Assembly: GCF_006345805.1 (NCBI RefSeq)
Contig: NC_043019.1
Location: 27,527,360-27,591,359, forward strand
Length of the DNA stretch: 64,000 bases
Source of the DNA: Octopus sinensis
Lineage: Eukaryota
Direction of reading: 5' to 3'
Part shown: in pieces, positions 15,302 to 49,565 of the stretch
How the letters are laid out: the number at the start of each line of letters is the position of its first letter
How positions within the stretch are numbered: position 1 is the first letter of the stretch
Position numbers and translations under genes: made by a program
Notes under the pieces: generated by a model
Seen by the model: the letters and a program-made list of their open reading frames with translations, nothing else
What the model was told of the DNA's origin: nothing
Databases searched by the model: none

Positions 15302-15346
<45 letters not shown>

Positions 15347-22800: not shown

Positions 22801-23154
22801 TTTATATGTAATATATGTGTATTGTATATGTAATATATGTGTATTGTATATGTAATATATGTGTATTGTATATGTAATATATATGTGTATTGTATATGTA
22901 ATATATATATGTGTATTGTATATGTAATATATATATGTGTATTGTATATGTAATATATATATGTGTATTGTATATGTAATATATATATGTGTATTGTATA
23001 TGTAATATATATATATATGTGTGTATTGTATATGTAATATATATATGTGTGTATTGTATATGTAATATATATATATATGTGTATTGTATATGTAATATAT
23101 ATATATATATGTGTATTGTATATGTAATATATATATATATATATATGTGTATTG

Positions 23155-23193
<39 letters not shown>

Positions 23194-23849
23194 ATTGTAC
23201 ATGTAATATATATATGTGTGTATTGTATATGTAATATACAATACACATATGTAATATATATATATATGTGTATTGTATATGTAATATATATATATGTGTA
23301 TTGTATATGTAATATATATATATATATGTGTATTGTATATGTAATATATATATATATATATGTGTATTGTATATGTAATATATATATATGTGTATTGTAT
23401 ATGTAATATATATATATATGTGTATTGTATATGTAATATATATATATGTGTATTGTATATGTAATATATATATATGTGTATTGTATATGTAATATATATA
23501 TGTGTATTGCATATGTAATATAATATATATGTGTATTGCATATGTAATATAATATATATGTGTATTGTATATGTAATATAATATATATGTGTATTGTATA
23601 TGTAATATAATATATATGTGTATTGTATATGTAATATAATATATATGTGTATTGTATATGTATATAATATATATGTGTATTGTATATGTAATATAATATA
23701 TATGTGTATTGTATATGTATATAATATATATATATATATGTGTATTGTATATGTAATATATATATATATATGTGTATTGTATATGTAATATATATATATA
23801 TATGTGTATTGTATATGTAATATATATATATATGTGTGTATTGTATGTG

Positions 23850-23911
<62 letters not shown>

Positions 23912-26900
23912 TGTATATGTAATATACAATATACTCAAGCTTGAGTATTATTGAGGAAGGTTGCATTGTTTCAAGCGATGAGGGATTATCATATGATAGA
24001 AGGGGATTATTTATGATTAAATTGTTAAACTACGTATACTGTTTATAATAGTCAAACTGGCGTCCTCATCTTAATGGTTGGTTGCACTATGTTTTGGCTG
24101 TTGAACTTGAAACACAGAAAGCGGAATGAGAACAGCATGCCCATCATCATCGTTTGACCCTTTAACATTCGAACCATCCATATCCAGGCAAAAATATTCT
24201 ACCTGTTTTATTTTCAAACCGAATTAGATCCAACCTTTCCCACCTACCCTACAATGTCATTCTAAGAATAAAACATTCACATCATTGAAATCTTGAATTC
24301 AAAACAATGTGAATAAACAAGCATTAGCTTTAACCCTTTCGTTACCGTATTTATTTTGAGATGCTCTCTGTTTCTTTCAGTTACTTTAAATATAACAAAG
24401 AATTTAGTAAAATAACTTAGCTATCGTTAAGCTAGTGTTAGGAACATAAATTATGACTAAGATTTGGTGGAAGATTTTAATTCAAAACATATGAAAACAA
24501 GACATTTGTACTCAGAGCCAGTTTTGGCCGGGTTGGTATCAAAAGAATAACCTGAATGCTAAAGGCTTAACATCTGTTTTCTATGCTGGCATGGGTCAGA
24601 CAGCTGGCCAGCTTGGGAGCTGTCTAGATTCCAATTGTTTGTTGTGGCATGGTTTCTATGGCCAGATGCCCTTCCTAACACCAACCACTTAACGGAGTGT
24701 GCTGGGTGCTTTTTACGTGCCACCAGCATGGGTGTGTTTCTGCAGCACCGGCATGGGTGTCTTTTATGTGGCACCAGTACCTGAAAGGACAAGCCTGTAC
24801 GTATGGAAGACAGAGATTTTACTTAGCTTGATGCTTCTTTTCAAGTACAGCAAATCCCCACATCTCGTGGTCCCTTGTCGTTTCCTCAGTGAGGCCCATC
24901 GTCTGAAGGTCCTTTCTCATCACTTCATCCCCATGTAGATCAAATAAAGGATTAGGTTCAAAGTTCGGATACAACAACTGAATTCAACACAAGACACCTG
25001 AAGATGGCTGGAGCATACAACAGCTGAAACGTAGTGAAAGTAATGATCAAAATGAGGACACCAGTTTGATTAATGTAAACGGTATACATAATATATATTC
25101 CTTATCTCAGCAATATAGAATTGTATTGTTGAACTACTGGTGACAAGAACAGTTAATCGGAATATTGAATTTACCTTTTGTAATGTTTGAATGAGATTTT
25201 CTAAAGCCTTGTCTCTCTCTCTCTCTCTTTAGATTCTCTAAAGCACTGTTCTCCCTCTCTCTCTCTTTTTCCCCACTCTAGGACAAACTTGAAAAACTTG
25301 AGAAAGAAATTGAAAAGTGGTTTCCTGAACTACCCAATGGCCAGATCCAAGAAGGGGACATTTGTGCTGCTGAAGTGGAGGGCTTTTATCACCGGGTGAA
25401 GGTTTTACAGATGAAGGAGAGCAGAAGAACTGTAAGTGGTATTTTATTGTACTGGATTTCTTCATTGTGACATTGGCACAGTACATCACATATGTGTCCT
25501 TCCCTTCTACAGCAACTTACTAACAAGGACGGAAACCTGATATTCATGCCTTTCCCAACGAGAAATGGGTGTTGAGTTGGGCTTAAGAGAAAAAACAGAA
25601 AATGGCTTGAAGGGTGATTTATTAAATAGGAAATGTTTATATAAGGAGTGGCTGTGTGGTAAAAAGTTTGCTTTCCAGCCACATGGTTCCAGGTTCAGTT
25701 CAGCAGTGTGGCACCTTGGGCAAGTGATGTGTTCTACAACTTCAGGTCAATCAAAGCCTTCTAAATAGATTTGGTAGACAGAAACTAGAAGCCCATTGTA
25801 TGTATATATGTGTGCGTGTCTGTTTACCACCACCGCCACTTGACAACCGGTGTTGGTGTGTTTATGTCCATGTAACTTAGGAGTTTGGCAAAGGAGACTG
25901 ATAGAATAAGTACTGGGCTTACAAAGGTACTGCGGTCAATTTATTTGATTAAAAATCCTTCAAGGGGCACCCCAGCATGGCCACAGTCCTATGACTGAAA
26001 CAGTTAAAAACAAAAACGAAAATAAATGAAACTGGTGTGTACATGTGAGTTGTGGTGTCAACTGTAGTAAGCAAGAGAGACAACTAAATTGGTACATGGT
26101 GGACATAGGCAGGGAATGGGTAGTAAAGTGTTTTATATCTCATCTTGTTTCAATTGGTGAAGTTCTTCATCTCCTGATTGCATGTTGTGGAAGCTCCAGC
26201 TTGGCACCTCTTCAACTAACTGACATCACGCCTGCATCAGTACAAGATGATGGACTATTTGAACATGGTGTGTGTAATGTGTGCCCTTTTTTTTTAACTT
26301 TTACTGTTTTCAGTCATTTGACTGTGGCCATGCTGGAGCAACACTCTAGCAGGTTGGTTTAGTGGAACAGATTGACCCTAGTACTTTTTTATTTACTTTA
26401 AAGTCTGGTACTTATTCTCTCAGTCTTTTTTGCTGAATTGCTAAGTTATAGGGATGTAAACAAACCAACACTGGTTGTCAACACACACAAACACACACAC
26501 ATGATGGGCTTCTTCCTGTTTCCATCTGCCAAATCCACTCACAAGGCTTTGGTCAGCCCAAGGCTATAGTAGAAGACCAAGGTGCCATGCAGTTGGATTG
26601 AACTTGAGAACATGCAATTGGGAAGCAAACTTCTTACCACAGCCTTTTGGTTTGTATAAAATGTATGAGACTGGATTTAAATGCAGTGATGTATATGTTT
26701 TAATGTGTGTATAATGTATACACTTTATAAAAAATATATAAAAGTGACTTACTAAACATTTTAAGATCTTGCATCTATGGTTACACTGTTTGAGGAGGTC
26801 GAATAAGACTTAAACATATCCTGAGTTGTGTCCCTTTGCCATTGCATTCTGGTGTTTGATTTTTAACTTATTCTTTTACATGTTGCAGTCATTAGACCGT

Positions 26901-27124: not shown

Positions 27125-30100
27125 CCAGAGTAAGCACATAAATGTGAAACAAGGTGGAAAAAAGAGTACTCAAATACCAGAGGTAGAGTAATATGCTTTA
27201 TTTAAAAGCAGCAGAAATATAACAAAGCCTTGTGAGTAGATTTGACAGACAGAAACTGAAAGAAGCCCATTGTGTATATATATATGTGTGTGTGTGTCTG
27301 TTTGTCCTCCCACCATTACTTAACCGATGTTGGTGTGTTTACGTCCCTGTAACTTGGCAGTTTGCTAAAAGAGACCGATAAAATAAGTACTAGGCTTACA
27401 AAGAATAAGTCCTGGTGTCAATTTGTTCGACTAAAGGTAGTGCCCCAGCGTGGCCTCATTCAAATAACTGAAACAAATAAAAGAATATATATATATATAT
27501 ATATATATAGATATATACACAACAGGCTTTCAGTTTCTGTCCACCAAATTCACTTTTAAGGCTTTGGTCGACCTGAGGTTATAATAGAAGACATTTTCCC
27601 AAAGTACCATGCAATAGAACTGAACCTGGAAACCTGTGATTGGGTAGTGGGCTTCTTACCACAGTCATTTCTGTCTTTTCTTGAGCCAGGGGACTGGAAT
27701 TAGTAATATAGATAACGATGTGTTTCAGTTATTACATAAAGCTGATTAATTAAAACTCCTTGCTCGCTAGGTGTGCTAGCGCTCACCTCAGTATCGTTTT
27801 GCTCATATAATGTTGTTTATGCTTTCTTTTTTCCTCTTAGGTGGAATGCCTATTCCTTGATCATGGTGATTCCGATAGACTAGTACTCAATCAGTTACGT
27901 GTACTAGATTCTACCTTGAATTATTTACCATACCAGGTGAGAAAAATCTCAGTTCCTCATATTCTTTACAGTCTTTTAGTAATGTGTGTGGGTGATTGAG
28001 TGGGGCTTGTGCTACCCCTAATATTATCTTTCTTCTCTCTTCTACGTCCCTCTATTACCCTCAACTTGTGCGTCATTGGTCACCCATCACTCCCTACATT
28101 CACCCTTCAGCCCTACGCAATATTTAATCTTTTAAGCATTCATGATATTTTGCCAGAATTAATACTTATTTATTCTCATTGTTTTGAACTAGTTATGCAT
28201 TATGTTTGTAGCTTTGAGGTTTTGAATAGGTAACAGGTAAGTTTTAGAATGGTATTGTTGGGTTGGTGTAAGAGGCCAGATCTGACAGTTATGAACATAA
28301 AACAGAATGCTTTCGCCGGATACAGCCGATTTATATGCTAAAGGGTTAAAACTGTCTCTACCTTGCATCCTCCTCTCCATCCTATCCCTGCCCCCTGTAC
28401 AGTCTTGCAAACCCCAACCAGTTCCTCTGTTCCAGCACACTTTTGCTCACCTCATACCCTGAGGAAAACCACATAGATTTGCAGTTCCTACTGATCATCC
28501 TTACCCTCTCCTAAAGGTGAGTAACCATGTAACTCCTCTACAAGAACCAGCTTACCTCATCACCCCCAATATTCTTGCATAAACGCTGTCCCCTCTTCAC
28601 CCATCCGGCTCCCACCTGGGTATTATAGTCTTTCAAGCTGCATAGCAACCTCAGTAGTGCTAGTGGCATGAAAAAAAGACCTTGTACACACTGTAAAGTG
28701 GTTGGCATTAGGAAGGGCATCCAGCCTTAGAAACCATGCCAGAGCAGACACTGGAGCATTTATTATTATGGCTGGGTTTCAGCCCAAGCCACAGCAACAA
28801 AGTCCACCTGCCACGAGATGTGGGGATTTGCTGTACTTGAAAAGAAGCATCAAGCTAAGTAAAATCTCTGTCTTCCATACGTACAGGCTTGTCCTTTCAG
28901 GTGCTGGTGCCACATAAAAGACACCCATGCCGGTGCTGTGGAAACACACCCATGCTGGTGACATGTAAAAAGCACCCAGCACACTCCGTTAAGTGGTTGG
29001 CATTAGGAAGGGCATCCAGCCTTAGAAACCATGCCAGAGTAGACACTGGAGCATTTATTATTATGGCTGGGTTTCAGCCCAGGCCGCAGCAACAAAGTCC
29101 ACTTGCCACGATTCTCAGTCCCTCATCACTGCCTCGAGGTCCTGGATACGGTTCAGGCCAGTGTCTGCAATCAAGTGGACTCTGAATAGCCTGACAGCAT
29201 TTTCCTCTTCTTACACCCCCATCACGTGGGTTCCACAAAAATTAATTCCGATGCTTCCAGCTCAGGCTGGCACATGCAGTGTTCCAGATAGTCACAGCCG
29301 TCTTTGCTTGATCTTCTTCCTAACTTTTGACTGGTCCTCATAAAGGATCACGATGCAGTCCTTCAACTCATCATTCCAACTTATGCTAGCATAAAGCACG
29401 GACCTTAAATAATGATGTTTGTGTGAGATGCATTCTGTGTTGAAATTGTTGGTTTTTTTCTTTTTTTTCCTCTCCCTTAACCCCCAAGTGTCCAGTTTAT
29501 TCTATCAAGCATATCATATCCTTGACAATTCAATGATTTGATTGTTTAATATAGAATAACATTGTGGGGAACAGGGTGGGGGGCAGGATTTTTTTTTGTT
29601 GGGCGTTGCTCAAGAGTTTTGAAAAAAATACTATTTAACCCTTTTGTTACCAACCTGGCTAAAACCAGCTCTAGCTCTGTAGTACAAATGTCTTGTTTCC
29701 ATAAGTTTTGAATTAAAATCTTCCACCAAACCTTAGTCACAATTTATGTTCCTAACACTGGCTGAATGATAACCAAGTTATTTTACTAAATTCTTTGTTA
29801 TACTTAAATTAAAGTAATTGAAAGAAACACAGAGCATCATCATCATCATCATCGTTTAGCGTCCGTTTTCCATGCTAGCATGGGTTCAAAATAAATACAG
29901 TAATGAAAGGGTTAAGGAGGGAATCGCAATTCATAACAAATGGACCCCATTTTTATGCATTCTGATTTTGTTGTAGCAGACCATAAGCATATGAAAGAGT
30001 AATGTTGTCCTGTGAGTCTTGATTTACCCATGGAAAGTAGTGGTCAACTGCACTTGTGTATCATAACTGAATAACATGGTCAGTTTTTTTTGGTGTCAGT

Positions 30101-32741
30101 TTGGCTAGGAAGGGTGTTACCCAAACAACTAGGACAGCACCCTTGCATCTGCCACTGGAGTAGGTGTGAGAGCCTGGATTTGGCCAGTTTGAGCATAAAA
30201 CAAATGGAGAATTTTGGCCAGATATGGCTGGTTTAATTGCTAAAGTGTTACAGGATGTCATTTCTTCACTGTGAAGACTTAATCCTCCAAGGTAAATATG
30301 ATTTCGCTCGAATCCCAACATGATGATTGCTGAGCAAAGGACAGTTCTGCTTTGTTGTAGTTGTCATTGATGATGAAGGGCAAACATCATATGATGGTGG
30401 TTGTTAATGTTGTAGTGGATGGAGTGGATCAAACCAATGGTGAAAAGCATGACCATCCCAACTTTGAAACGTAGTGTATTTCAAGTAATAATCACTTTTA
30501 GCATCATTTAATGTTCATTTTTCATGCTGGCAGGGGTTCGACAGTTTGGCAGGAGCTGGCAAGGTTGGAGAGTTGCACCAGGCTTCACTAGTTTGCTTTG
30601 GTATTGTTACTACAGCTAGATGTCCTTCCTAATGCCACCTACTTTTCAGAGTGTATGGAGTGCTTTTTATGTGGCACCAGCACCAGCAGGGTTGCTGAAT
30701 AACTTGCAAGACAAAAACCTCTCAGCTGGGAGATAACATTATTCAATTTTTCTTTTCTTTCATTTTAAGACATCAGAGTGTAATTTGTATTCCACCTGTT
30801 CTCCTCTGTGCCACAAAGGAGGTGCGGGGGCATGAAGAAATATTATTTGTATCATTTGTTATTATTATCTTTTCTTTGCAGGCAATTCCTTGTGTTCTTG
30901 CTGGTTTAGAGCAATATTCTTGTAATATCGGTGCCATTGACAAGTTGATGGAAATGGCACTTGGCAAGACTTGTGTGGCAGAAGCTGTGACAAAGTAAAC
31001 ACCAAACTTATTCTATCTTTCTTTGTGTGTGTGTGTGGGGGGGCTTAGTGGTCTGGGTGTTCAACAGTACATTGTACCCTTGAGCAAAGCCCTCCACTCC
31101 ACTTTGTTCTGTTCCACTTAATTCTACATAAATATGAGTAGCAACTGGTAGTTAACCTTGTGACATGCTAGTGGCCGGTGTTCTGTAGGAAGCCTTGTAC
31201 ACACTGTCTCTTAAAACTGTTTAGCATTCAGATTATTATTCTATCTAATGTAATGTTTATTTATTCATATCGCTTTGAATTAATCCTAGATTATCTCATA
31301 GCTGCGTGATTTCAATGTGTGGTTGTTTAGTTTTAGATTGACACTGTAGAGTATGTGTGAGAGGCCGATCTGGTCAGTTATAACATAAAGCAAGTAAAAT
31401 ATACAAGAACAAGCTTCAGTTGAATGAGTCTGTATGCTTGATAACCAAGCCTCTGTGTGTGTGTGGTTGCAAAGTGTATTATAACAAAATAATTCTTTAA
31501 AAAATGTCATTCTGTTGTTCTAATACTGTTTCCCCACTCAGTGAAGTCCCTTGGTCAAGTGATTTGAGTGTTCAACTCCTTATCGTATGATTGTGAGTTT
31601 CTTTACCTGGACTGGTCAGTGTTTGTGTCCTTAACAACCTGATTTATTTTTCCCTGTTGTGCCAGGTTACTCTGTTGTAGCAATTGCTAACCAGATGTCG
31701 GTGCTGCCCTTTCTCTTTCTGGCTGTTGTCACATCCTTAGATGTTCCACTGGATCAAGAGTGAGGTGCTGTGAAGGAGTTCATGCCTGCTCATGACTACA
31801 CAGGCAGCTAAAACAGTTGGTGAAAGTATGGTACAAATTAGCAAGACATACTTATGACGGCTACTCACTTATGTGTGTGTGTGTCTATATAGATTTATAT
31901 ATAGCTGAATATGTTCATATAGGTTTATATACAGCTGAGTGGATTGGAGCAACATGAGTTGAATTCCTGGGGCATGCTGTGTCCTTGAGCAAGACACTTT
32001 ATTTCACATTACTGCAATTTTCTCAGCTGTCAAAAACGAGTTGCATCTGTAATGTATATGTATGTCTATCCATGTTTGTATGTATATATAAATATGACTT
32101 GGTCTGAGTGTGTGTGTGTGTGTGTGTGTATGTATCGTCATCATCGTTTAATGTCCATTGTCCATGCTGGCATGGGTTGGACTGTTTGACCAGGGCTGGT
32201 AAACTGAAAGGCTGCACCATACTCCAGTCTGATTTAAGCATGGTTTTCTACGGTTGAATGCCCTTCCTAATGCTAACCACTCTGAGAGTGTAACCATTGC
32301 TTTTACCTGCCACTGGCATGGGTGCCATTTGCGTGACACCGGTATGCCACACCTGTGATTTTGCTTGGCTTGATGTGTCTTCTCAAGCACGACATAATGT
32401 CTAGGGTCTCGGTCATTGCCTCTGTGAGGCCCAATCCCTGAAAGGAATTCTGACACTTTGCCTCTGTAGGGCCCAACACTCGAGTGCCATGTAGCTCCCT
32501 GCTCTTCTAACAATAGCAGCTCAAACTCTCTCAATGAACTCCATATTCTATGTTGTTAAAGTTGAACATCAATTATGTCTGTCAAACGCAGCCATAACAG
32601 TCTATGGTTTCTGCATCTTCTGCTCTAGCCAAAAAAAATAAATAAAATAATCACATGATTTTTAGTCCTAAATTTTAGTACTTCTTGTTCCTACAATGTT
32701 TACATATATATATATATGCAACGGGCTTCTTTCAGTTTCCG

Positions 32742-33863: not shown

Positions 33864-33916
<53 letters not shown>

Positions 33917-34875
33917 CAAATTTTCTGTTTCAATGTATTTTTCTATTTGTCCAGAGATAACAAGATCTTTGCAGTTTTGTATGATACAATGGGTGAAGAT
34001 GACATTAACATCAACAAGGCTGTTGCAGAGTTTGCTGAATCTGAAGGGACAGATTTGCTGAGTAGTTTGGTGCACGATGGCACTGAATCCGTTTCCAGCT
34101 CAACTCTCTCTGAACTTTCAATGAAATCAACGACCACGCTAGAGAATGTGATGAAGCAGTCCAGCTTGAAGGACTCGGCGACCTCGCCCACTGCCAGTAG
34201 TAGCAGCCACACCTCGCCTGTATCTGGGCATCCGCCAGATTCACCGGCCAGCTTCTCCCTACATCACCCTAACCCTAACTCTCCAGATAGTAGTAGCAGC
34301 AGCAGCGTTTGTTCCGGTATTGTCACCGGCTTGCCTGGCAGCTCGACACCACTCAGCAGATCTTCCGATAGAATCTCAGCAAAGACACCAGAGACCCCAG
34401 CCATGTCGACCACTTCAGCAGTTGTTACTCCCAACAGCAGTGACTTTCCCTCTTCAACGAGTTCTGTTATCAGTAGTTGTAGTGATTCATCGAATACTGA
34501 TGCTGTTTGGTCAAAGGCTGACTACATCAAGTTGAAGCCGCCGGGACCCTTCAAAATGGCTCCCATCCCAGATGTGACCTTCGTGTATATCGACTACATA
34601 GCTGACCCTTCTAACTTTCATGTAAGTATTCACCATTGTATTTTATTCTTCCCGTCTTTTTATCTCTCACTTGCTTCAGTCGTTAGACTGTGACCAAGCT
34701 GGGGCGCTGTCTTGAATTTTTAGATGAATGAACTGAACCCCGGGTACTTATTCCATCGGTCTCGTTTTTGCTGAACTGGTGACACACCAACACCAGTTGT
34801 CAAGTGGTGGTTGGGGACAAACACAGACATAACAACACACAACATAGACATACATATATATATATATATATATAC

Positions 34876-34908
<33 letters not shown>

Positions 34909-37900
34909 GATATATATATGGTAGACTTTCTTCAGTTTCCATCTAGTAAATCCACTCACAAGGCTTTGGTTGGCCTGAGGTTATAGTAGAAGACACTTGC
35001 CCAAAACTGCCACACACTGGGACTGAACCCAGAACTATGTGGTTGGGAAACAGGCTTCTTACCCAACAGCCATGCCTGCATCTATATTTGTTTACTTCTT
35101 TCCACACACACTTGTTTATTTTGGTGCAGTGGCTGTGGGTTTAACCCATTGACATTTAAACCAACCTATCCAGCTCAAATATTCTACCCAGTTTTATGTT
35201 AAAACTGGTCAGATCCAGCCTCTTACACTTACCCTACAGTGTCACTCTAAAAATATACAGTCACATCATTGAAATGTCAAAGCTACAAGATAATGCACGA
35301 TTAATTCAAAATAATGCGAATAAATAAGCAATACGTTTGAGAAAGTAAAGTGAGTGCTAAAGGGTTAACATGTTGGACTACTGACCACCTGGTCATAAGT
35401 TCAAACCTTACAACAGCCACCACTGTTGTACTGTGCCCCTGAGAAAGTTCTCTTGCTCAAGCTTCACACCAGCTTCATCGTTCACTGATTGGGAATAGAA
35501 AAGAGCATCCACCCATAAAAACAGTCAGTCGATCCCATTCATGCAGGTATAAAATAATGGGGTCATCCATCGATTGATTGATCGATCCATCCATCTCTTT
35601 CTCACTGCTTTTGAGAAGGTCATGGGGGTAGAGCCCTCAGGCACCTCTTCTCAGGGTCCTATCAGAATGAACTGTCATAACACTTTCTGGTTGCATTCCC
35701 AAATGACCAACTATGGACATTATCCAACCATCCTAGTCTTGGCCTGCTCCTACATCACCTGCCAGTTGGCTCAGCTTAAAGAATCGACCTTGAAATTTTT
35801 TCCTGCAACATTTTAATAACATGTCTATAGTATTAAGGCTGTGATTTCTCAATGTGGAGAAGTTCCAATTCCTGGGAGGGTCATGATAGTGAAGTCCTCA
35901 GGCCCTTCCTCCATAGGGTCCCATCAGGTGCAACTGTCGTTAGACTTTCCAGCTGAATTCCCAAGCATGACCAGCTGAGACCATGGACATTATCCAACCA
36001 TCTCATTTCTTAAGTCTCCTACCAGTTTGCTTGGCTTGAAGAATCCATCATGCAAATATGTCCTGTCACATTCCAATCCCATGTCCACAGCGCCAGAACT
36101 GTGACCTCCTCAATATGGAAAAGAAATGTTTTATTGTAAAGTAAAAAGCAAAAGAAAAAAAACACCTCCAAAATTTATCTTTGTGATGTTGTGGCATAAT
36201 GTTGATTGACATTAAGTTTCAGGGGTCAAACGAATCGCTTACTGTAATCATGGTCCCTCTCATTAGGAAGGGACATAACTTTGATTGCCTCAACATTCGC
36301 TAACAAATTGATTTTATTCCATGGTTGATTGGTTTGGTTAATAACAACAACAAACAAATCATTCAACTGTAAAGTTATATTGATGTATAAATAATCGAAC
36401 ACTCTGCATCTCTCCTCCTCTATTTCTACTCCTCTTCTGGCACACATCTCTCTTCATCTTTATCCTCTCTGTCTGTTCCTCCTCTCTCTCTCTTCTTCTA
36501 TTCCTTGGCTTCTACCTCCAATTCCTCCCCTCCTTCATCTCTTCTCCTCCTCCTCTACCTCTCTGCCCATCTCTTCGCTTCCTCCTTCCACCGCCACTGT
36601 TATCTCTGTCCATTTCTTTTCCTCTTTGTCTTCTTTCTGTTTCCTGTCTATGTACTCCTGCTCCCCCTTCTTCCTTTGTATGTCCAAGTCTCCTCCTACT
36701 CACCCACCTCCTTGTTCATCTCTCCTCCTCCTCTACCTCTCTGCCCATCTCTTCGCTTCCTCCTTCCACCGCCACTGTTATCTCTGTCCATCTTTTCACC
36801 TCCTCCCTCTCCATCTCCTCTCTGTCCATCTCTCCACCTCTCTGTCCATCTCTCTTTCTCCACCTCCTCCCTATCCATCGCTTCCACCTTGGCCATCTCG
36901 CCTCCTCCTCACTGTCCACTTCTCCACCTCCTCCTCCTCATTTTTGTCTCCTCCTACTCACCCACCTCCTTGTTCATCTCTCCTCCTCCTCCCCCTCTCT
37001 CTCTTTCAACTTTTATTTCACTTTCATTTCAAAACTTCTTTCTTCCAGATTATTCCCTTTGACTTCCTGGCAGAACGAGATAATTTCACCGCCAGATTGA
37101 CTGACAAGATGAAAGCCACCTCACCGGTCAGTTACCACTTTTACTCATGCCCCAGCTGGAGCACCATCATCTCTTTTCTGTTTGTCTGTTTCTGTTTTAC
37201 ATATTTTGTTTCTGTTTTGTTGGTCTTCCGTTTGATATTTAAAACCCTCTTCAACCAATCATCAGCTGGTGATCAATGTTTGTTTGAAACCTATGCGGCT
37301 CTCTTGGTCCTCTTAGCTGTCTTCCTCTTTATTCATGAACTCGGGGTTATTTTCCAATAATCCATCTCACACACACCCTGGCTTCTGTGCCGGTGGCATG
37401 TAAAAAGCACCAACCGATCGTGGCAGCTGCCAGCCTCCCATGGCACCTGTGCTGGTGGCACGTAAAAAGTACCCACGACACTCACGGAGTGGTTGGCGTT
37501 AGGAAGGGCATCCAGCTGTAGAAATACTGCCAGATCAGACTGGAGCCTGGTGCAGCCTCCTGGCTTCCCAGACCCCCGTTGAACCGTCCAACCCGTGCTA
37601 GCACGGAAAACGGATTTTAAATGATGATGATGATATATATATATATCTATATATATATATATATAAAGGTGGAGCACCACCTTTAGTTGACTTATTCTTT
37701 GTAAGTCCAGTACTTATTCTATAGGTCTCTTTTGCCAAACTGCTAAGTTCATCAAGCGATAGACACACACACACACACACACACACATAACAATTGTTCA
37801 TTTGTTTTCCACCTGCCTTCGTCTTTTGTTTATTTTCATAAAGCTTCCCGTTATATATATATATATACATATATACGACGGGCTTCTTTTAGTTTCCGTC

Positions 37901-38437
37901 TACCAAATCCACTCAGGGCTTTGTTGGCCTGTGGCTATAGTAGAAGACACTTGCCTAAGGTACCACGCAGTGGGATTGAACCGGGAACCATGTGGTTCAT
38001 AGGCAAGCTACTTACCACACAGCCACTCCTATGCCTATATATATATATATAAAGTAGAAAGTAATGTAAAACCATTATGGAGAATATATTATGAATAATT
38101 AAGATTATTTATGAATATATCAATGGCCAAACATGTTATCATAAAATATAAAGAAGAAAAACGTTTATAATTATGAACAAGTCACAATTATAACTAAGAA
38201 GGTTTCAAAACCCTTACATGTTAAAAATAGCAGCCAAGACCATTATGTCACTCATTATTTCTCCTCACAATAAAAGCTGTCTTCGGGCGACATGGCAAAT
38301 AGAATCCACAACTTGAAAATAACTGGTTAATTCCCTATTGCAATTTTGACGTTAGGAACCTCTTAAGGGACTCATTCATATCGTCACGGGAAATATTCCT
38401 TTAGATAGAAATCAAAACAAGACTTTACCTTGGGGCT

Positions 38438-38468
<31 letters not shown>

Positions 38469-40503
38469 TGAAGTAGATAGATGAATTATCTTATTACGGA
38501 TAATTCGAAAGATAACCGATACCTGGGTAGCAAAATTCACAACAGAAAGGGCACGGTTGAAGTTACGACCATGGGGCATAAAATCCGTGCCTTAGTGCGG
38601 AAATTTGAAGTTTTATATATTAAGTATAGGAAAGAATGGAGCTGAACGAAGATTTAACAAAATTCCTTTATTTTATTTTCGACATATGTTTCGAAGTCTG
38701 CAAAGTCCCTAATTCCGATTGAATAAGGAGTCCAAGCTGCAAAATGGACTCCTTATTCAATCGGAATTAGGGACTTTGCAGACTTCGAAACATATGTCGA
38801 AAATAAAATAAAGGAATTTTGTTAAATCTTCGTTCAGCTCCATTCTTTCCTATATTTAATATATATATATATATATATATATAAGTACATCCTAGTGTGA
38901 TTGTTGCCAGGGCCACGGATTGGCTCCCGTGCTGGTAACACGTAAAGAGGACTATTCGAGTGTGATCGTTGCCAGTGTCGCCTTACTGGCACATGTGAAA
39001 AACAACATTCAAGCGTGATTGTTGCCAGTGCCGCTGGGCTGGCTCCTGTACAGGTAGCACATAAAAAACACCTTTTGAGCGTGATTGTTGCCAGAATCGC
39101 CTGACTGGCCCTCATGTCGGCAGCACGTAAAAGCACTCACTACACTCTCAGAGTGGTTGGCGTTAGGAAGGGCATCCAGCTGTAGAAACTCTGCCAGATC
39201 AAGATTGGAGCCTGGTGCAGCCATCTGGCTCACCAGTCCTCAGTCAAACCGTCCAACCCATGCCAGCATGGAAAGCGGATGTTAAACGACAATGATGATG
39301 TGTGTGTGTGTGTGTATATATCCTGTGTGTTTATGTAATTATGTTGTTCATCTTTTTTTTCTTTTTGTTAAGACAGCATAATTTGAGGGAAATTTAAGTG
39401 TGCCATTTCTTGCATGTTGAACAACTGCATAGACATTTCCTGAATGTACAAACGGTATCGGACTGAGTTTGAACCAGGGTCCTAGCACTACTCTCTCTCT
39501 CTCCTGATGCATACGTGACAATGTTTCTCTTTTCCGTTTCAGCTCGTCACACTAACTGATAACGACGTTCTATTGTCACATCCGTACGTATCGAACGTTG
39601 ATGATGCTTGGTATCGAGTAATCCCATCGTCAGTCTGTGAAGACGGAGGTTATGTAAGTTACACCCGGCTACTTGCTTTTCTTAACTTGATGATGATGAG
39701 TGCAATGGTGGTGATGCTGATTGTGATGATGGTCATAATTGATATTAACCCCTTAATGGATCAATTATTTTGACATGGCGTTTCATTTCTGAGCATATTT
39801 TTATTATTTCCTGTTTTAATTATATACACTGTGTTAATTACAAAAAAAGTTTTTTTATCTTGTTTCCTTTATTTTTTATTATAGAAATTAAAATGTACTT
39901 TTACTCATTTGGATTTAAACGAGTTAACTTGGACATTGAAAAAAATACATATAACTTAACTATCTTCGATTTTTTTAATAAGATGTATTGTTTTTAAATC
40001 AAAAGAAAAATTTTTTAAAAAAATCTGATAGACAGTTTATTTAGAATGATAATTTTTAAAACAAGGAGTTACACACAAAGTTATCTTGCAGACATCACAC
40101 GTGTATCTGCTCTCTCTTCGAATCGGACAAGCAATTGATTTCATGCCATGCACATGCATCTATCTGATTATCTTCTTTGTCACCTTCTGAAAAATTGTCA
40201 GAGTCTGAACAACACGTGTCTAATTCATCCCCAGAGCTTTCCAGATCGTGAAATGAAAAATCGCATTCGTGATCGCTGAATATATCTAAATCTTCTTCCA
40301 TTTTGAGGGAAAAAATGCGTAAATAATTCTCTTATTTGTATGTGGCTGTGTGGTAAGTAGCTTGCTAAACAACCACATGGTTCCGGGTTCAGTCCCACTG
40401 CGTGGCATCTTGGGCAAGTGTCTTCTGCTATAGCCCCGGGCCGACCAATGCCTTGTGAGTGGATTTGGTAGACGGAAACTGAAAGAAGCCTGTCGTATAT
40501 ATG

Positions 40504-40534
<31 letters not shown>

Positions 40535-42778
40535 TTGTGTGTCTGTATTTGTCCCCCTAGCATTGCTTGACAACCGATGCTGGTGTGTTTACGTCCCCCG
40601 TCACTTAGCGGTTCGGCAAAAGAGACCGATAGAATAAGTACTGGGCTTACAAAGAATAAGTCCCGGGGTCGATTTGCTCAACTAAAGGCGGTGCTCCAGC
40701 ATGGCCGCAGTCAAATGACTGAAACAAGTAAAAGAGTAAAAGAATAAAAGAGTAATCAAAACGAGACGGTTCTAAAATGACGTCAACCCCCTCCTGAATC
40801 TGAGAATGCACTGAAGTAAAAATGCAAAACTCAGAAGCATAAATTCTTTGAAATGGCACCAGAATATGTGCTGCCAGGCGTACGACAACGCGAGTAAATT
40901 CGTGATTGCTCAAAAATGAAACGACACAAAATAAATAAACTCGTTTGAGTGCTAAAATTAAAAGTTAGTTTCGACTGAGTATACTCGTCTGGTTCTAAAA
41001 AGATTCATTTACGATGCACGAGTAAACTCTGGATAATCCATTAAAGGATTAATGATGATGACGGGTGTGATGATGATGATGATGATGAATGCAGTGTTGA
41101 TGATTATGATTGTGGTGGTGATGATGATGATTATGATTGTGGTGGTGGTGATGATGATGATGATGATGAATGCAGTGTTGATGATTATGATTGTGGTGGT
41201 GGTGATTGCAATGATGATGGTGATGAAAGTGACAATGGTGGCTCTAATAATGGTAGTTCTTCTCTCTCTCTCTCTCTCAATTCTTCTTCCTTCCAGTTTG
41301 TCTGGTATGCTGATTATGGTGGATATGATTTTGAATGTACAGAAAACCTGAAGCCCCTTCCGGAAGAATTTTGGGATCTTCCCTATCAGTCTGTTACATG
41401 TAAATTAAACAGTAAGTAATTTTTTCCCCCCCTTTTATTCTTGTTTTATATGTTTGCACAGGCATGGCTGTGTGGTAAGAAGCTTCCTTCCCGAAAGGGA
41501 GCACCTTTAGCCTGTACACAGGATCCTGAATGGCCTCAACAGATAGCTGTGGAGGTCATAACGTTGTCCGTGATGAATAGGCTGAAGGGACTCAAAGAGG
41601 AATATCGCTTGTACCCAGGCGACGCCGACACGGCACCCACTTTGTTCTTGAATGAGGCATGGGTGATGGCGGAGTATGCGGGCACAAGCGATGTTGAGGA
41701 GGAATAGTGATAAGAGGTTGAAAACCCTCAGTGTTATTGAAAGTTCCAAGGTTGGAAAGAAAGGTAAGAGGCTTAGCGCCTCATTTTGTTATTGAATTTT
41801 CTTATTGAATATTGTGAATAGTGTAGAGGTTTGTTGCCTCATGAACAATATACAAGAGATCATTGTTCTTGGGAAAAATCAATCGGCAGGCGTCCTTTTT
41901 TCCCCCATTAATCATCATTTTCATTTCATATAACATTACGTCTATGTCCAGCCCACAGCTTCCTTTCTCTGTGTAAGGCCTTATGGCCAATATAATGAAA
42001 TAAAGAAGCTTCCTTCTCAACCACATGGTTCTGGGTTCAGTCCCACTATGTGTCACCTTGGCAGTCCCACTGCATGTAACCTTGAGCAGACCAAAGCCTT
42101 GTGAGTGGATCTGGTAGATGGAAACTGAAAGAAGCCCATTGTATACATATTATAGATATATATATATAAACATATATATATATATGTATATTTATGTGTG
42201 CCCCCACCATCGCTTTTCAACCGATGTTGGTGTGTTTACGTCCCTGTAACTTAGCGTTTTGGCAAAAGTGACTGATAGGATATGTATTAGGCTTACAAAG
42301 AATAAGTCCTGGGGTTAATTTCTTTGATTAAAGGTGTTGCTCCAGCATGGGTGAAACAAGTAAAAGAACAAAAGAATGGCTAGAAGCATTGATGGGTAAG
42401 ATGGTGGTGGTGATAAAGTAAAACGCAGCCTAGCAGTCTTGACCACTGGTCAGCTAACAGTCTTGTTCACTCATTGCCCTCTCTGATTCTTCAATCTTCA
42501 CTCACTCATAATGTTTTTAATCTCTTCTTTCAGATTTTATTCCAAAGAGGGGCGATACGTGGTCAGAAGCAGCAAAATATAAGTTTTTGGAATTGGCCAA
42601 CAACAAGTGCTTCGCTTGCATTGTCAAAGACACATCGACGGCAACAGACTCTGGATCAGCATCAGTGCCAGGGACGGAGAGTGCGATTCCTGTTGTGTTG
42701 ATCGATACCTGTGGGGAAGAAGACGTCTGCATTGATGAGGTCTTGCTTGCCTTCGGCTATGGCCAGTATAAGTCGTAG
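1468..42778 (+). CDS. TDRD7: TDRD7-like multi-Tudor protein gene, 3' part (16 coding exons; about 794 aa in window; 5' end upstream of window)
   Basis: Exon chain 1468-1505, 2837-2948, 4328-4438, 5523-5663, 8106-8187, 9773-9907, 13159-13248, 22113-22213, 25282-25431, 27841-27936, 30882-30994, 33955-34621, 37049-37126, 39543-39653, 41297-41411, 42534-42778. All junctions are GT-AG with compatible phases. Motifs PLMLP..VIIRIVGENYS, LAGLE..VLYDTMGEDDININ and LPYQSVT..WSEAA..VVLIDT match human TDRD7 as I recall it (PLMIP..VVIRYVGKDYS; LAGLE..VLYDTSGEDDININ; LPFQAVT..WSEEA..VYLVDT). Orthology is unverified by search. Confidence 0.8.
2228..2625 (-). mobile_element. SINE family B, two copies
   Basis: Same consensus as 58-500 and 12338-12750. 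Confidence 0.75.
2837..2948 (+). CDS. TDRD7: Tudor gene exon (SVLNVYVSFIYSAAQFYVHYETSCIQEIDAELNLHCQ)
   Basis: ttgcag acceptor, gtaagt donor; N-terminal strands of extended Tudor A. Confidence 0.85.
3020..3560 (-). mobile_element. SINE family A copies (composite)
   Basis: Reverse complement of the family A head and tail (cagtcattggactgcggccatgctgg..). Confidence 0.7.
4328..4438 (+). CDS. TDRD7: Tudor gene exon, Tudor A core (GGFCVAQYSDNDAWYRASILDID)
   Basis: tttccag acceptor, GT donor at 4439, phase 0-0; canonical Tudor motif CxAxY..WYRA. Confidence 0.9.
5523..5663 (+). CDS. TDRD7: Tudor gene exon, Tudor A (EVYYVDYGNTE..YPAQAILCAL)
   Basis: tttacag acceptor, gtagga donor, phase 0-0; VDYGN and PxQAxxC motifs. 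Confidence 0.92.
6365..6509. mobile_element. Mariner-derived MITE
   Basis: Imperfect TIR ttaggttgtcccaaaagttcgt / acaaacttttgggacaaccttata with TA flanks; resembles the mariner TTAGGTTG terminus. Confidence 0.7.
7092..7400 (-). mobile_element. CR1/L2-type LINE 3' end
   Basis: Antisense of KHFFTLRVAEAWNKLPASVV..SFK RT C-terminal tail; copies at 11945-12245 and 47655-47958. Confidence 0.7.
7515..7965 (-). mobile_element. Family C retroposon (RTE-tail-like, (GAT)n 3' end)
   Basis: catcatc..ttccatgctggcatgggtt..ctggatgccc..aatgccaaccact consensus; at least 15 copies in the window. Confidence 0.7.
8106..8187 (+). CDS. TDRD7: Tudor gene exon (EETDFEASKQEFGALAQDQLQAKTVLI)
   Basis: Pyrimidine tract plus cag acceptor, gtaaat donor; phase 0 to 1 fits its neighbours. 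Confidence 0.75.
8715..9038 (-). mobile_element. tRNA-derived SINE
   Basis: Minus strand begins gcatggctcagtggttagagcatcgagc..gagttcgaatccc (A and B boxes), followed by gtgttcttgagcaagacactttatttc. Confidence 0.75.
9075..9375 (+). mobile_element. Family C retroposon
   Basis: Ends ccaacccatgccagcgtggaaagcggatgttaaacgatgatgatgat. Confidence 0.7.
9773..9907 (+). CDS. TDRD7: Tudor gene exon (DNKVCHVILINPESPSKLSINDILVNSKLA..)
   Basis: ctctttag acceptor, gtaaat donor, phase 1-1; SINxxLVxxxLA is the typical C-terminal helix of an extended Tudor domain. Confidence 0.85.
10110..10881 (-). mobile_element. Degenerate mariner transposon, 5' part with transposase N-terminus
   Basis: TIR tacgaatgtcagctgaaaagttc at 10881; translation GIIKYL..DMVATLENDAPALSTLQK.AAEFKRG.ESLEEDSRS matches the mariner HTH region (STVxKWxAEFKRGRxSLEDDPRSGRP). 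Confidence 0.8.
11945..12245 (-). mobile_element. CR1/L2-type LINE 3' end (degenerate)
   Basis: Homologous to 7092-7400. Confidence 0.6.
12338..12750 (+). mobile_element. SINE family B with tandem internal duplication (about 185 bp)
   Basis: tatttcgtctgtcgttacgttacgagttcgaattccgccgaggtcgac occurs twice, near 12386 and 12571. Confidence 0.85.
13159..13248 (+). CDS. TDRD7: Probable linker exon (ENGVCSPTSPPPSPSPPTLCVDSVRDEKFA)
   Basis: gtttccag acceptor; phase-1 donor at 13249 or an alternative at 13255; Pro/Ser-rich with no domain motif, so support is weaker. Confidence 0.55.
13974..14392. repeat. 108-bp tandem repeat, about 4 copies
   Basis: ccttcctcattttaag recurs at 13974, 14083, 14191 and 14299. 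Confidence 0.9.
14795..15060 (+). mobile_element. tRNA-derived SINE (related copy at 20375-20640)
   Basis: tRNA-like head, then gtgttcttgagcaa and cacctgacacgtggtacaccgtgcacctg..ggagggagtgagctaa, shared with 20375-20640. Confidence 0.65.
15122..15562 (+). mobile_element. SINE family A, full length with internal (TA)n
   Basis: Head ggctgtgtggt..ggttccgggttcagtccc, internal microsatellite, tail gcggtgctccagcatggccgcagtcaaatgactgaaac. Confidence 0.88.
15930..16149. mobile_element. piggyBac-type MITE (family D)
   Basis: TTAA flanks, termini cctttt/ccctttagcatt..aatgctaaaggg; copies at about 11078-11290, 17862-18085, 21470-21673, 28124-28345, 35145-35364 and 47098-47316. Confidence 0.8.
16848..17115 (-). 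mobile_element. Family C retroposon
   Basis: catcatc..gtttaacgtccg..catgctggcat consensus. Confidence 0.7.
18325..18392. repeat. 15-bp tandem repeat (cttgagccagtctgt), about 4.5 copies
   Basis: Directly visible. Confidence 0.9.
18625..18785 (-). mobile_element. SINE 3' part with core gatggactggcgtcccgtccag
   Basis: Shares ctgtactcttt..ccacaactttctctcact with the SINEs at 49695 and 55556 but has a different tail. Confidence 0.6.
19371..19506. repeat. Near-perfect palindrome centred on (TA)n
   Basis: aggttattaatatcactatgcttaagtaaaatatataatacatat.. mirrored at 19441-19506. Confidence 0.9.
19545..19678. repeat. Foldback/MITE-like element, 53-bp arms (2 mismatches), 28-bp spacer
   Basis: Arms 19545-19597 and 19626-19678. 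Confidence 0.9.
21470..21673. mobile_element. piggyBac-type MITE (family D)
   Basis: ttaa|ccctttg..aaaggg|ttaa. Confidence 0.75.
22113..22213 (+). CDS. TDRD7: Tudor gene exon (APLMLPADRFWDVYVCFLSSTTDVIIRIVGENYS)
   Basis: ttttgcag acceptor, gtgagt donor, phase 1 to 0; resembles the recalled human TDRD7 segment PPLMIP..SNTNEVVIRYVGKDYS. Confidence 0.88.
22545..23930. repeat. About 1.4-kb compound minisatellite [GTGTATTGTATATGTAAT(AT)n]
   Basis: Dozens of copies of a conserved 18-mer with a variable (AT)n spacer. Confidence 0.95.
24334..24545. mobile_element. TTAA-type MITE (family E)
   Basis: ttaa|ccctttcgttacc..; reverse-complement homolog at 29639-29911 with both TTAA flanks. Confidence 0.7.
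24565..24935 (-). mobile_element. Family C retroposon
   Basis: Consensus match; includes a 206-bp segment nearly identical to the reverse complement of 28811-29016. Confidence 0.75.
24995..25036 (+). ncRNA. Degenerate minimal hammerhead-ribozyme-like motif (Penelope-type terminus)
   Basis: cac-CTGAAGA-t-ggctg..cagct-GAAA-C-GTA-gtg: core, stem II, palindromic stem III and a 3-bp stem I. Confidence 0.45.
25282..25431 (+). CDS. TDRD7: Tudor gene exon, Tudor B core (EGDICAAEVEGFYHRVKV)
   Basis: ctctag acceptor, gtaagt donor, phase 0-0. Confidence 0.9.
25645..26010 (+). mobile_element. SINE family A
   Basis: Consensus match; inverted family A copy at 26305-26645. Confidence 0.75.
26305..26645 (-). 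mobile_element. SINE family A
   Basis: Reverse-complement consensus match. Confidence 0.7.
27841..27936 (+). CDS. TDRD7: Tudor gene exon (VECLFLDHGDSDRLVLNQLRVLDSTLNYLPYQ)
   Basis: cctcttag acceptor, gtgaga donor, phase 0-0; FLDHG and LPYQ motifs. Confidence 0.9.
28660..29150 (+). mobile_element. Family C retroposon with internal duplication
   Basis: gtggttggcattaggaagggcatccagccttagaaaccatgccagag occurs twice, near 28698 and 28993. Confidence 0.75.
29639..29911. mobile_element. TTAA-type MITE (family E) carrying a 48-bp family C 3' fragment
   Basis: ttaa|cccttttgttacc..aaaggg|ttaa; insert at about 29838-29885. Confidence 0.8.
30882..30994 (+). CDS. TDRD7: Tudor gene exon (AIPCVLAGLEQYSCNIGAIDKLMEMALGKTCVAEAVT)
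   Basis: tttgcag acceptor, gtaaac donor, phase 0 to 2. Confidence 0.9.
32135..32490 (-). mobile_element. Family C retroposon
   Basis: Consensus match. Confidence 0.7.
32935..33118 (+). mobile_element. (TA)n-associated short repeat with hammerhead-like motif (second copy 59485-59655, minus strand)
   Basis: Two diverged copies; motif tcttt-CTGTCGA-a-gagc-ntag-gctc-GAAAC-rTA-aaaga. Confidence 0.6.
33188..33273 (-). ncRNA. Hammerhead-like motif with long stem II (Penelope-type)
   Basis: Minus strand gcag-CTGAAGA..GAAAC-gatc-ATA-ctgc; 4-bp stem I and near-palindromic stem III. Confidence 0.4.
33691..33852. repeat. Inverted repeat, about 55-60 bp arms, embedded in (TA)n
   Basis: taaattagaaaaaaacaccttttatcaattcaaaatgaacaatt..acaccatcta mirrored at 33794-33852. 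Confidence 0.88.
33955..34621 (+). CDS. TDRD7: Large exon: end of Tudor B (VLYDTMGEDDININ), Ser/Thr/Pro-rich linker, start of Tudor C (YIADPSNFH)
   Basis: gtccag acceptor, gtaagt donor, phase 2 to 0; lies within ORF 33947-34693. Confidence 0.92.
34680..35078 (-). mobile_element. SINE family A
   Basis: Reverse-complement consensus with internal (TA)/(CA). Confidence 0.75.
35600..36120 (-). mobile_element. Two degenerate RTE-like LINE C-terminal fragments
   Basis: Minus strand agatggttggataatgtcca (RWLDNV) occurs twice, then gaccctatggagg; resembles the RTE GRPxxRWxDxI..DRxxWR region. Confidence 0.4.
36400..37000. repeat. CT-rich low-complexity tract with an internal duplication of about 100 bp
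   Basis: cctcctcctctacctctctgcccatctcttcgcttcctccttccaccgccactgttatctctgtccat near 36547 and 36726. Confidence 0.85.
37049..37126 (+). CDS. TDRD7: Tudor gene exon (IIPFDFLAERDNFTARLTDKMKATSP)
   Basis: cttccag acceptor, gtcagt donor, phase 0-0. Confidence 0.8.
37375..37635 (+). mobile_element. Family C retroposon
   Basis: Consensus match ending in (GAT)n. Confidence 0.8.
37675..38032 (-). mobile_element. SINE family A (interrupted)
   Basis: Reverse-complement consensus; the internal microsatellite hosts a fragment of the 32935-33118 repeat. Confidence 0.7.
38615..38864. repeat. Near-perfect long palindrome: 120-bp arms, 10-nt loop
   Basis: Arms 38615-38734 and 38745-38864; one mismatch seen. 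Confidence 0.95.
38890..39300 (+). mobile_element. Family C retroposon with internal tandem subrepeats
   Basis: gtgattgttgccag subrepeat x4, then consensus 3' end. Confidence 0.75.
39543..39653 (+). CDS. TDRD7: Tudor gene exon, Tudor C core (HPYVSNVDDAWYRVIP)
   Basis: gtttcag acceptor, gtaagt donor, phase 0-0; WYRV motif. Confidence 0.88.
39749..41048 (-). mobile_element. Internally deleted piggyBac element with nested SINE A (40341-40750)
   Basis: TTAA at 39745-39748 and 41049-41052; TIR ccccttaatggat / atccattaaagga; acidic ORF 40301-40095 (MEEDLDIFSDHE..) resembles the disordered piggyBac transposase N-terminus. Confidence 0.7.
40341..40750 (+). mobile_element. SINE family A, near-consensus full length
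   Basis: Full head, (TA)/(TG) centre and tail. Confidence 0.9.
41052..41250. repeat. Compound (GAT)n/(GGT)n microsatellite
   Basis: Directly visible. Confidence 0.9.
41297..41411 (+). CDS. TDRD7: Tudor gene exon (FVWYADYGG..LKPLPEEFWDLPYQSVTCKLN)
   Basis: cttccag acceptor, gtaagt donor, phase 0 to 1. Confidence 0.92.
42534..42778 (+). CDS. TDRD7: Terminal coding exon (..GDTWSEAAKYKFLEL..VVLIDTCGEEDVCIDEVLLAFGYGQYKS*)
   Basis: ctttcag acceptor, phase 1, TAG stop at 42776-42778. Confidence 0.9.
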
Positions 42779-49385: not shown

Positions 49386-49565
49386 TTAGTTTTGTGACTT
49401 GTTGCTCCACCCTAAGGATCGTTCAATCCAACCACGCATGGACGATATCTTTGTGAAAACGTTTGGAGAATTGGCTGCACAGTTGTAGCGTCCTTTAGAC
49501 AAAACTCCTACAATAGTCCACCGATTGTCTGGTTCCCAGCACATCAAGGCACCTCCACTGTCACC
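49386..49565 (-). CDS. Protease terminal exon, catalytic Ser (GDSGGALMC..VGVLSKG..PNVFTKI..*)
   Basis: tttgcag acceptor, phase 0, stop at 49386-49388. Confidence 0.95.
   Translation of the reverse strand, partial: GDSGGALMCWEPDNRWTIVGVLSKGRYNCAANSPNVFTKISSMRGWIERSLGWSNKSQN

Follow-up and report, generated by a model that had tools for sequence, protein, structure and literature searches.

The locus studied here raises the question whether octopus TDRD7 has lost one of its Tudor domains, and what the low complexity sequence at this place represents. TDRD7 acts as a core organiser of germ granules, and in mammals it is involved in RNA granules of the lens as well. The window, a stretch of 64,000 nt from Octopus sinensis (NC_043019.1, positions 27,527,360 to 27,591,359, forward strand), is AT-rich with 38% G+C and contains many microsatellites. 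For the region 33955-34621 the original prediction had proposed a TDRD7-like protein in which the middle Tudor domain was replaced, in a lineage-specific manner, by a Ser/Thr/Pro-rich, phosphorylatable linker.

The window represents the 3' two-thirds of the Octopus (sinensis-type) TDRD7 gene. Using tblastn and exact peptide mapping, 15 coding exons on the plus strand could be mapped exactly to residues 394-1158 of the 1158-aa protein; residues 1-393, the LOTUS domain among them, are encoded upstream of the window. Because the window exons are exactly identical to the proteins P0208/P0002, this LOTUS domain can be tied to the window. It was detected as Pfam PF12872 (OST-HTH/LOTUS) at residues 3-57 of P0002 (2.9e-11), as is typical of the TDRD7/Tapas family. 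The top LOTUS-containing profile matches are proteins named TDRD7, and the top full-length matches are the TDRD7-like proteins of Argonauta, Porites and Odontophorus as well as the O. sinensis 'tudor domain-containing protein 7'. RefSeq names the O. sinensis proteins tudor domain-containing protein 7 or 7B (XP_029649813.1, XP_029649814.1, XP_036368475.1). Hence the octopus gene is an ordinary TDRD7 ortholog that is already annotated. Upstream of the window, residues 236-304 of P0002 are modelled by AlphaFold2 as a helix, three strands and a helix, similar to a dsRBD and located between the first LOTUS and a second helical domain. Residues 284-346 of the Lineus protein (P0089) match Pfam dsrm (1.4e-06). 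These observations suggest a putative double-stranded-RNA-binding-like domain in lophotrochozoan TDRD7.

Pfam TUDOR matches the octopus protein in three stretches (2.4e-57), all of them encoded in the window, and AlphaFold2 predicts three folded blocks at about residues 410-520, 610-784 and 950-1158. According to the profiles the extended Tudor domains, designated A, B and C, span residues ~395-592, ~598-784 and ~949-1158. All exons described in the following are on the plus strand. An exon at 1465-1506 (aa 394-407 of P0002/P0208, exact peptide mapping) lies just before Tudor A. Tudor A itself is encoded at 2838-2945 (aa 408-443, SVLNVYVSFIYSAAQFYVHYE..., coordinates to within a codon), 4325-4438 (aa 444-481, ...FCVAQYSDNDAWYRASILDIDDEK), 5523-5663 (GEVEVYYVDYGNTERV...ILCALFQLIPPQ, with the DYGN signature and a Pfam TUDOR match of 1.3e-10), 8103-8186 (aa 528-555) and, as last exon, 9772-9906 (DNKVCHVILINPESPSKLSINDILV...). 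Between Tudor A and B an alternative cassette of 32 codons (ENGVCSPTSPPPSPSPPTLCVDSVRDEKFAGG) is located at approximately 13158-13253. This Pro/Ser-rich cassette is present in the O. sinensis isoforms X1 and X3 and in one Octopus bimaculoides model and is skipped in isoform X2. Tudor B comprises exons at 22112-22213 (APLMLPADRFWDVYVCFLSSTTDVIIRIVGENYS), 25282-25431 (aa 635-684), 27841-27946 (VECLFLDHGDSDRLVLNQLRVLDSTLNYLPYQ) and 30882-30994 (AIPCVLAGLEQYS...CVAEAVT plus the AA of a Lys codon). It ends within the exon at 33955-34621, where Tudor C starts. The remainder of Tudor C is found at 37049-37126 (IIPFDFLAERDNFTARLTDKMKATSP), 39543-39653 (LVTLTDNDVLLSHPYVSNVDDAWYRVIPSSVCEDGGY), 41297-41411 (FVWYADYGGYDFECTENLKPLPEEFWDLPYQSVTCKLN) and, up to the stop codon, 42534-42778 (…FIPKRGDTWSEAAKYKF…VLLAFGYGQYKS).

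Several further features were seen in and around the gene. The intron between Tudor B exons 1 and 2 harbours a 1.4-kb AT-rich tandem array (22537-23926) with a period of 26-28 nt and about 50 copies, which overlaps an (AT)n tract. A short interspersed repeat occurs in many copies on both strands (e.g. 880-1095, 15155-15406, 25510-25746, 37763-37999 and 40228-40677; pseudo-translation ...GFGWPKATVEDTCPRCHAVGLNPEPCG...). Judged by its letters, this repeat in the TDRD7 introns is probably a SINE-like element. Two arrays of the 20-nt tandem repeat TGGAAATACAGATCATGGTG, with about 35 copies each and higher-order periods of 111-171 nt, are located at 60793-61547 and 62015-62754. Downstream of TDRD7 and on the opposite strand lies a gene recognised from its domain matches as a trypsin-like serine protease. 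Here three open stretches within 49389-55454 on the minus strand match Pfam Trypsin: an N-terminal part with IIGG...TAAHC (54987-55454), a middle part (52297-52599) and a part with GDSGG (49389-49634). In Pecten (L003, 49176-50596) and Lineus (L004, 6163-8475) the TDRD7 span contains a nested BTB-domain gene in antisense orientation, on the minus strand in both cases. This may reflect conserved microsynteny, and the octopus counterpart region is probably located upstream of the window.

The exon in question comprises 667 nt (222 codons) and is open in frame from end to end; it is contained in an ORF at 33914-34690. The upstream neighbour exon ends at 30994 (...ACA AA|gtaaa). At the 5' edge an A at 33955, preceded by tccAG, completes the Lys codon and is followed by GAT AAC AAG (DNK); at the 3' edge the exon ends with CAT|gtaagt at 34621. 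The predicted coordinates of a single uninterrupted exon were thus exact to the base. The translation reads DNKIFAVLYDTMGEDDININKAVAEF...(S/T/P-rich)...VWSKADYIKLKPPGPFKMAPIPDVTFVYIDYIADPSNFH. It is 100% identical to residues 755-976 of the O. sinensis protein XP_029649814.1 (P0208), with a single residue differing in Octopus vulgaris CAI9739538.1 (P0002). The exon carries the end of Tudor B with its last strands and helix (DNKIFAVLYDTMGEDDININKAVAEFAESEG), a 164-aa Ser/Thr/Pro-rich, disordered spacer and the start of Tudor C (...DVTFVYIDYIADPSNFH), whose first strands are found in the 3' part of the exon (…PIPDVTFVYIDYIADPSNFH). Near the start of the exon the Tudor B ending VLYDTMGEDDININ displays the motif L[YFW]DT..E.D.N.N, which closes unit B throughout the TDRD7/Tapas family. 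In our alignment (A1) L762, D764, T765, D770 and N774 are invariant, N772 and I773 nearly so. Searched alone, the exon gives no match in Pfam because no more than the edges of two domains fall within it. A word-indexed protein search with the exon alone likewise yielded no match, and a first concatenation of exons retrieved one weak Tudor protein only.

To assign the Tudor units across animals, orthologs were gathered with HMMER across the full library and then with a profile search, and names were taken from cluster look-ups. Lophotrochozoan orthologs served to build the profiles for A, B and C. A fourth class, X, corresponds to the second Tudor of birds (vertebrate Tudor 2 class), and its profile derives from Lineus and Owenia only. 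In the octopus, unit A (residues 395-592) scores 248 bits and lies ahead of B. The three bird units are recognised as B (112 bits, next best 53), X (70 vs 46) and C (149 vs 54), and the four units of the coral Porites as A (113 vs 81), B (129 vs 76), X (147 vs 59) and C (125 vs 84); these labels come from profiles partly trained on the same proteins. The neighbour-joining tree of 36 Tudor units from 11 species is free of labels. Each class forms a clan in this tree, with bootstrap values of 80 (A), 87 (B), 61 (X) and 91 (C) out of 100, the weak points being the X clan with only 61 and the divergent second unit of birds. Both approaches support orthology of octopus Tudor B to bird Tudor 1 and of octopus Tudor C to bird Tudor 3, as far as can be judged from sequence. 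The predicted equivalence of Tudor C and vertebrate Tudor 3 was hence borne out by profile scores and tree, as compared to birds.

Neither the profiles nor the 36-unit tree reveal an X-class unit in the octopus protein, and no vertebrate-type Tudor follows the DININ motif. That the protein lacks the middle Tudor is therefore correct in so far as the homolog of vertebrate Tudor 2 is missing. It does not hold for the number of domains: the octopus still has three Tudors (three by Pfam), with B in the middle, because an extra N-terminal unit A is present. A sequence search of the PDB returned TDRKH, TDRD1 and Tudor domains only, with no TDRD7 Tudor structure that could serve for numbering. The units also differ in their signatures, which read VDYGN (A), LDHGD (B) and ADYGG (C) in the octopus, VDHGF (B), MDTGR (X) and LDYGK (C) in birds, and VDYGN in unit X of Lineus, Owenia and Porites. 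Molluscs are thus devoid of X, which bears VDYGN in the invertebrates that retain it, yet keep the VDYGN unit A; birds have no VDYGN unit at all. Extended Tudor domains require an aromatic cage and an Asn, and any interpretation of these signatures depends on this requirement.

All molluscs in our dataset show the order A-B-C without X: Octopus, Argonauta, decapodiform transcript contigs, Pecten, Mytilus, Saccostrea, Pinctada, Patella, Gigantopelta and Batillaria. In the aligned mollusc orthologs low complexity begins right behind the …DT..E.D.N.N motif. Lineus longissimus, a nemertean, and Owenia fusiformis, an annelid, in contrast carry a full extra Tudor X directly after this motif. The TDRD7-like protein of the coral Porites lutea has four units in the order A-B-X-C, and Pfam TUDOR counts four stretches in Porites as well as in Lineus. 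The birds Odontophorus (P0174, partial) and Cyrtonyx (P0214, full length) show B-X-C with no A. Their Tudor 1 ends with ...FVLYDTSGEDDININ and Tudor 2 begins about 15 residues on, so that the expected layout, with DININ closing Tudor 1 and Tudor 2 directly behind it, is valid for these two birds. The sampling is thin: three mollusc classes (cephalopods, gastropods and bivalves) are covered, and beyond molluscs it consists of one nemertean, one annelid, one coral genus and, for vertebrates, only birds. Save for the decapodiform transcript contigs all proteins are computational gene models. Proteins of Lytechinus (P0177) and Harmonia (P0179/P0180) exhibit LOTUS and a single Tudor, are probably TDRD5-like or reduced and were left out of the architecture argument. 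A one-Tudor 'TDRD7' has likewise been described in a sea-urchin paper (PMC12925329).

The exon maps show how the two architectures relate to each other. One fused exon from the end of B to the start of C is found in Octopus (222 codons), Patella (184 codons) and Pecten (297 codons). In Porites the same region is divided into a B-end exon, five X exons and a spacer/C-start exon, and in Lineus into a B-end/X-start exon, three X exons and an X-tail/spacer/C-start exon. The outer boundaries are common: one lies about 7-8 residues before L[YFW]DT, the other just after the DPSNF-type motif (GPGLFM| in Porites). The Lineus exon with spacer and C start ends at …DPSNF|, the same point as the octopus exon.

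The most likely starting point is an ancestral metazoan TDRD7 that possessed the four Tudor units A-B-X-C and, in front of C, a disordered spacer. A deletion on the mollusc stem would have taken out X and joined the flanking exons in frame, resulting in A-B-spacer-C. It would have extended from just past the DININ helix into the old spacer exon, so that the X exons and their introns disappeared. The fused exon would then owe its 5' boundary to the old B-end exon and its 3' boundary to the old exon of spacer and C start. On the vertebrate side, for which birds were examined, A is absent and the order is B-X-spacer-C. We regard this history as a whole, with the four-unit ancestor, the deletion of X on the mollusc stem and birds without A, as very likely. 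The fused exon is plainly shared by the molluscs mapped, and a deletion is the simplest reading of its origin. Stepwise loss, i.e. exon skipping followed by intron loss, would be an alternative route, with a single deletion being the simplest. It is likewise probable, though to a somewhat lesser degree, that the 'three Tudors' differ by phylum as a consequence of reciprocal losses from a four-Tudor ancestor, with the sampled molluscs devoid of the third unit and birds devoid of the first.

The opposite direction of change has to be weighed as well. The ancestor might have been A-B-C as in molluscs, X being inserted later elsewhere, e.g. as a copy of a neighbouring unit. Duplications arise easily among tandem Tudor units, many Tudor proteins contain 8-18 units, and X is nearest to A in the tree. 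However, X occupies the same position after DININ in a cnidarian, in two lophotrochozoan phyla and in vertebrates, and the X units group together. Late insertion thus needs several identical independent insertions or else one ancient gain with loss in molluscs, the latter being identical to the history favoured above. We consider a late origin of X improbable.

According to the unit profiles Tudor B ends at residue 784 and Tudor C begins at residue 949, which leaves a spacer of 164 aa. With 49 Ser, 18 Thr and 14 Pro, these three amino acids make up 49% of the spacer as compared to 16% of the rest of the protein. AlphaFold2, based on an alignment of seven sequences, assigns a pLDDT below 50 to residues 784-939 and of about 70-85 to the flanking Tudors. 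The spacer is therefore predicted to be disordered with no sign of a folded domain. Profiles and structure prediction confirm the expected succession of Tudor B end, low complexity and Tudor C start, with no room for another domain. Between octopus and other cephalopods the spacer core is 27-32% identical, compared to 73-75% for Tudor B. Its first ~46 residues (GTDLLSSLVHDGTESVSSSTLSELSMKSTTTLENVMK…, about 34046-34183) are 61-70% identical in octopus, Argonauta and decapodiform cephalopods, and may hold a binding motif or be a linear motif specific to cephalopods. From composition, predicted disorder and the fast divergence of the core we infer that the spacer would act as a flexible linker of low conservation that ties two folded Tudor modules together within a multivalent scaffold. 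Phosphorylation of the spacer is plausible from its composition. In the alignment an acidic SWETE(E)n patch is common to the non-cephalopod mollusc spacers (Pecten, Mytilus, Saccostrea, Pinctada, Patella, Batillaria), the majority of which also show a short (L/I)YTW motif ahead of Tudor C; in cephalopods (D)xWSKA.Y..LK.P is found instead.

Could the linker nevertheless have evolved newly in octopus or cephalopods as a phosphorylatable substitute for Tudor 2, as originally proposed? X is indeed absent, a Ser/Thr/Pro-rich spacer sits in the matching place, and cephalopod spacers are the richest in these residues with 43-49% as compared to 23-34% in other molluscs. Yet gastropods and bivalves possess the same B-spacer-C architecture and, in Patella and Pecten, the same fused exon, so the arrangement is not specific to one lineage of cephalopods. 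Moreover, the spacer between X and C is of low complexity and already 163 aa long in Lineus and 169 aa in Owenia (the B-C spacers of molluscs range from 125 to 240 aa, and birds have 57 aa before C). Since these X-bearing relatives already have a spacer of this length before C, it predates the loss of X. It also shares an exon with the start of C and bears no similarity to X. A replacement is hence very unlikely. That other invertebrates share the arrangement as an ancestral state had been named as the finding that would speak against a lineage-specific change. Other molluscs do share it; it appears to be derived, though, not ancestral.

A spacer that descends from X itself, decayed in place into low complexity, has a comparably small chance. 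The spacer sits where X would be, and the conservation of its beginning among cephalopods could be read as a remnant. However, the X profile shows no match on the exon even at E=10 with filters off, and hhalign of the cephalopod or the all-mollusc spacer against X yields a probability of 0.1-0.2%, compared to more than 99% for the controls A, B and C against X. Neither secondary structure nor confidence is predicted in the spacer, its length equals the X-C spacer of Lineus and Owenia and not X plus spacer, and the X introns are absent. Six frames of the 64-kb window (open stretches of at least 12 codons, filters off) were also searched with the X profile, which matched the known Tudor A, B and C exons only, all else having E>0.5. 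An X unit within a flanking intron was rejected on the same grounds.

An artefact, by which mis-assembly or a gene-model error hides X exons or alternative splicing adds X, is hardly credible: although the proteins are predicted models and two O. bimaculoides models break exactly before the exon, the 667 nt form a continuous open frame with canonical AG/GT ends, so that any insertion by splicing between B and C would necessarily destroy one of the two, X-like sequence is absent from the 64 kb, the exon is whole in three of three RefSeq isoforms, and the decapodiform contigs show B-spacer-C. The isoforms vary in the 32-aa cassette between A and B and in an alternative 3' end, and together with the window they lend no support to splicing that adds a Tudor 2 homolog. 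The decapodiform contigs are taken as transcript assemblies because their 4-5 kb encode the whole protein of 1177-1217 aa. As for O. bimaculoides, the models P0207 (763 aa) and P0209 (786 aa) stop at the residue before the exon (after ...AEAVTK). Devoid of spacer and Tudor C, they look like truncated annotation.

Taken together, the deletion of X on the mollusc stem remains our preferred reading, and its novelty is modest. Neither a new kind of protein nor a new mechanism is involved; what is added is the picture of reciprocal loss. An incomplete literature search found no prior account of a four-Tudor TDRD7 or of different Tudor loss between phyla. Comparative papers on the piRNA pathway treat the three Tudors of TDRD7 as equivalent across animals. 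If molluscs have A-B-C and vertebrates B-X-C, functional inferences for single domains need to be re-mapped, and the transfer of function by domain from mouse or zebrafish would be misaligned for molluscs and perhaps for flies. Molluscs would then test the dispensability of unit X and vertebrates that of unit A. The shared fused exon would constitute a rare genomic change marking gastropods, bivalves and cephalopods, and a textbook-style case of domain loss through an exon-fusing deletion.

A published mollusc protein fits this layout. TDRD7 of the clam Ruditapes philippinarum has Pfam TUDOR domains at 447-563, 644-764 and 962-1078 of 1134 aa (PMC8277629), i.e. three Tudors with a gap of ~200 aa before the last one as in the octopus. 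The authors regarded three Tudors as the conserved metazoan set, did not read the gap as a missing unit and generated an antibody against 'the second of three Tudor domains' (PMC8277629). The four-Tudor proteins of Lineus longissimus (XP_064652910), Owenia fusiformis (CAH1773704) and Porites lutea (XP_073250935) resemble octopus TDRD7 in A, B, C, the spacer and the outer exon boundaries. They differ from it by keeping X directly after DININ, with 3-5 extra exons and the signature VDYGN.

Vertebrate TDRD7 (the birds P0174 and P0214; human and mouse TDRD7/TRAP in PMC4210518 and PMC12925329) is the ortholog according to the profile search and shares the N-terminal LOTUS and the orthologous units B and C with the octopus. 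In birds the L[YF]DT..E.D.N.N ending of B and a disordered spacer before the last Tudor are likewise found. However, the bird order is B-X-C with a 57-aa spacer and no A, compared to A-B-C with a 164-aa spacer and no X in the octopus. B is the first Tudor after LOTUS in birds, which have no A, and is preceded by A in the octopus. Tudor 1, 2 and 3 therefore do not correspond by number. In the literature three Tudor domains are given for TDRD7 and for Drosophila Tapas (CG8920), the latter being described as the TDRD7 homolog with one LOTUS (PMC4210518). In fly and mouse LOTUS binds and stimulates Vasa, and the Tudors bind methyl-arginine PIWI proteins in nuage or germ granules (PMC5458760, PMC4210518). 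Judged by its sequence signatures octopus TDRD7 would likewise be a LOTUS-plus-Tudor scaffold of germ granules and the piRNA pathway.
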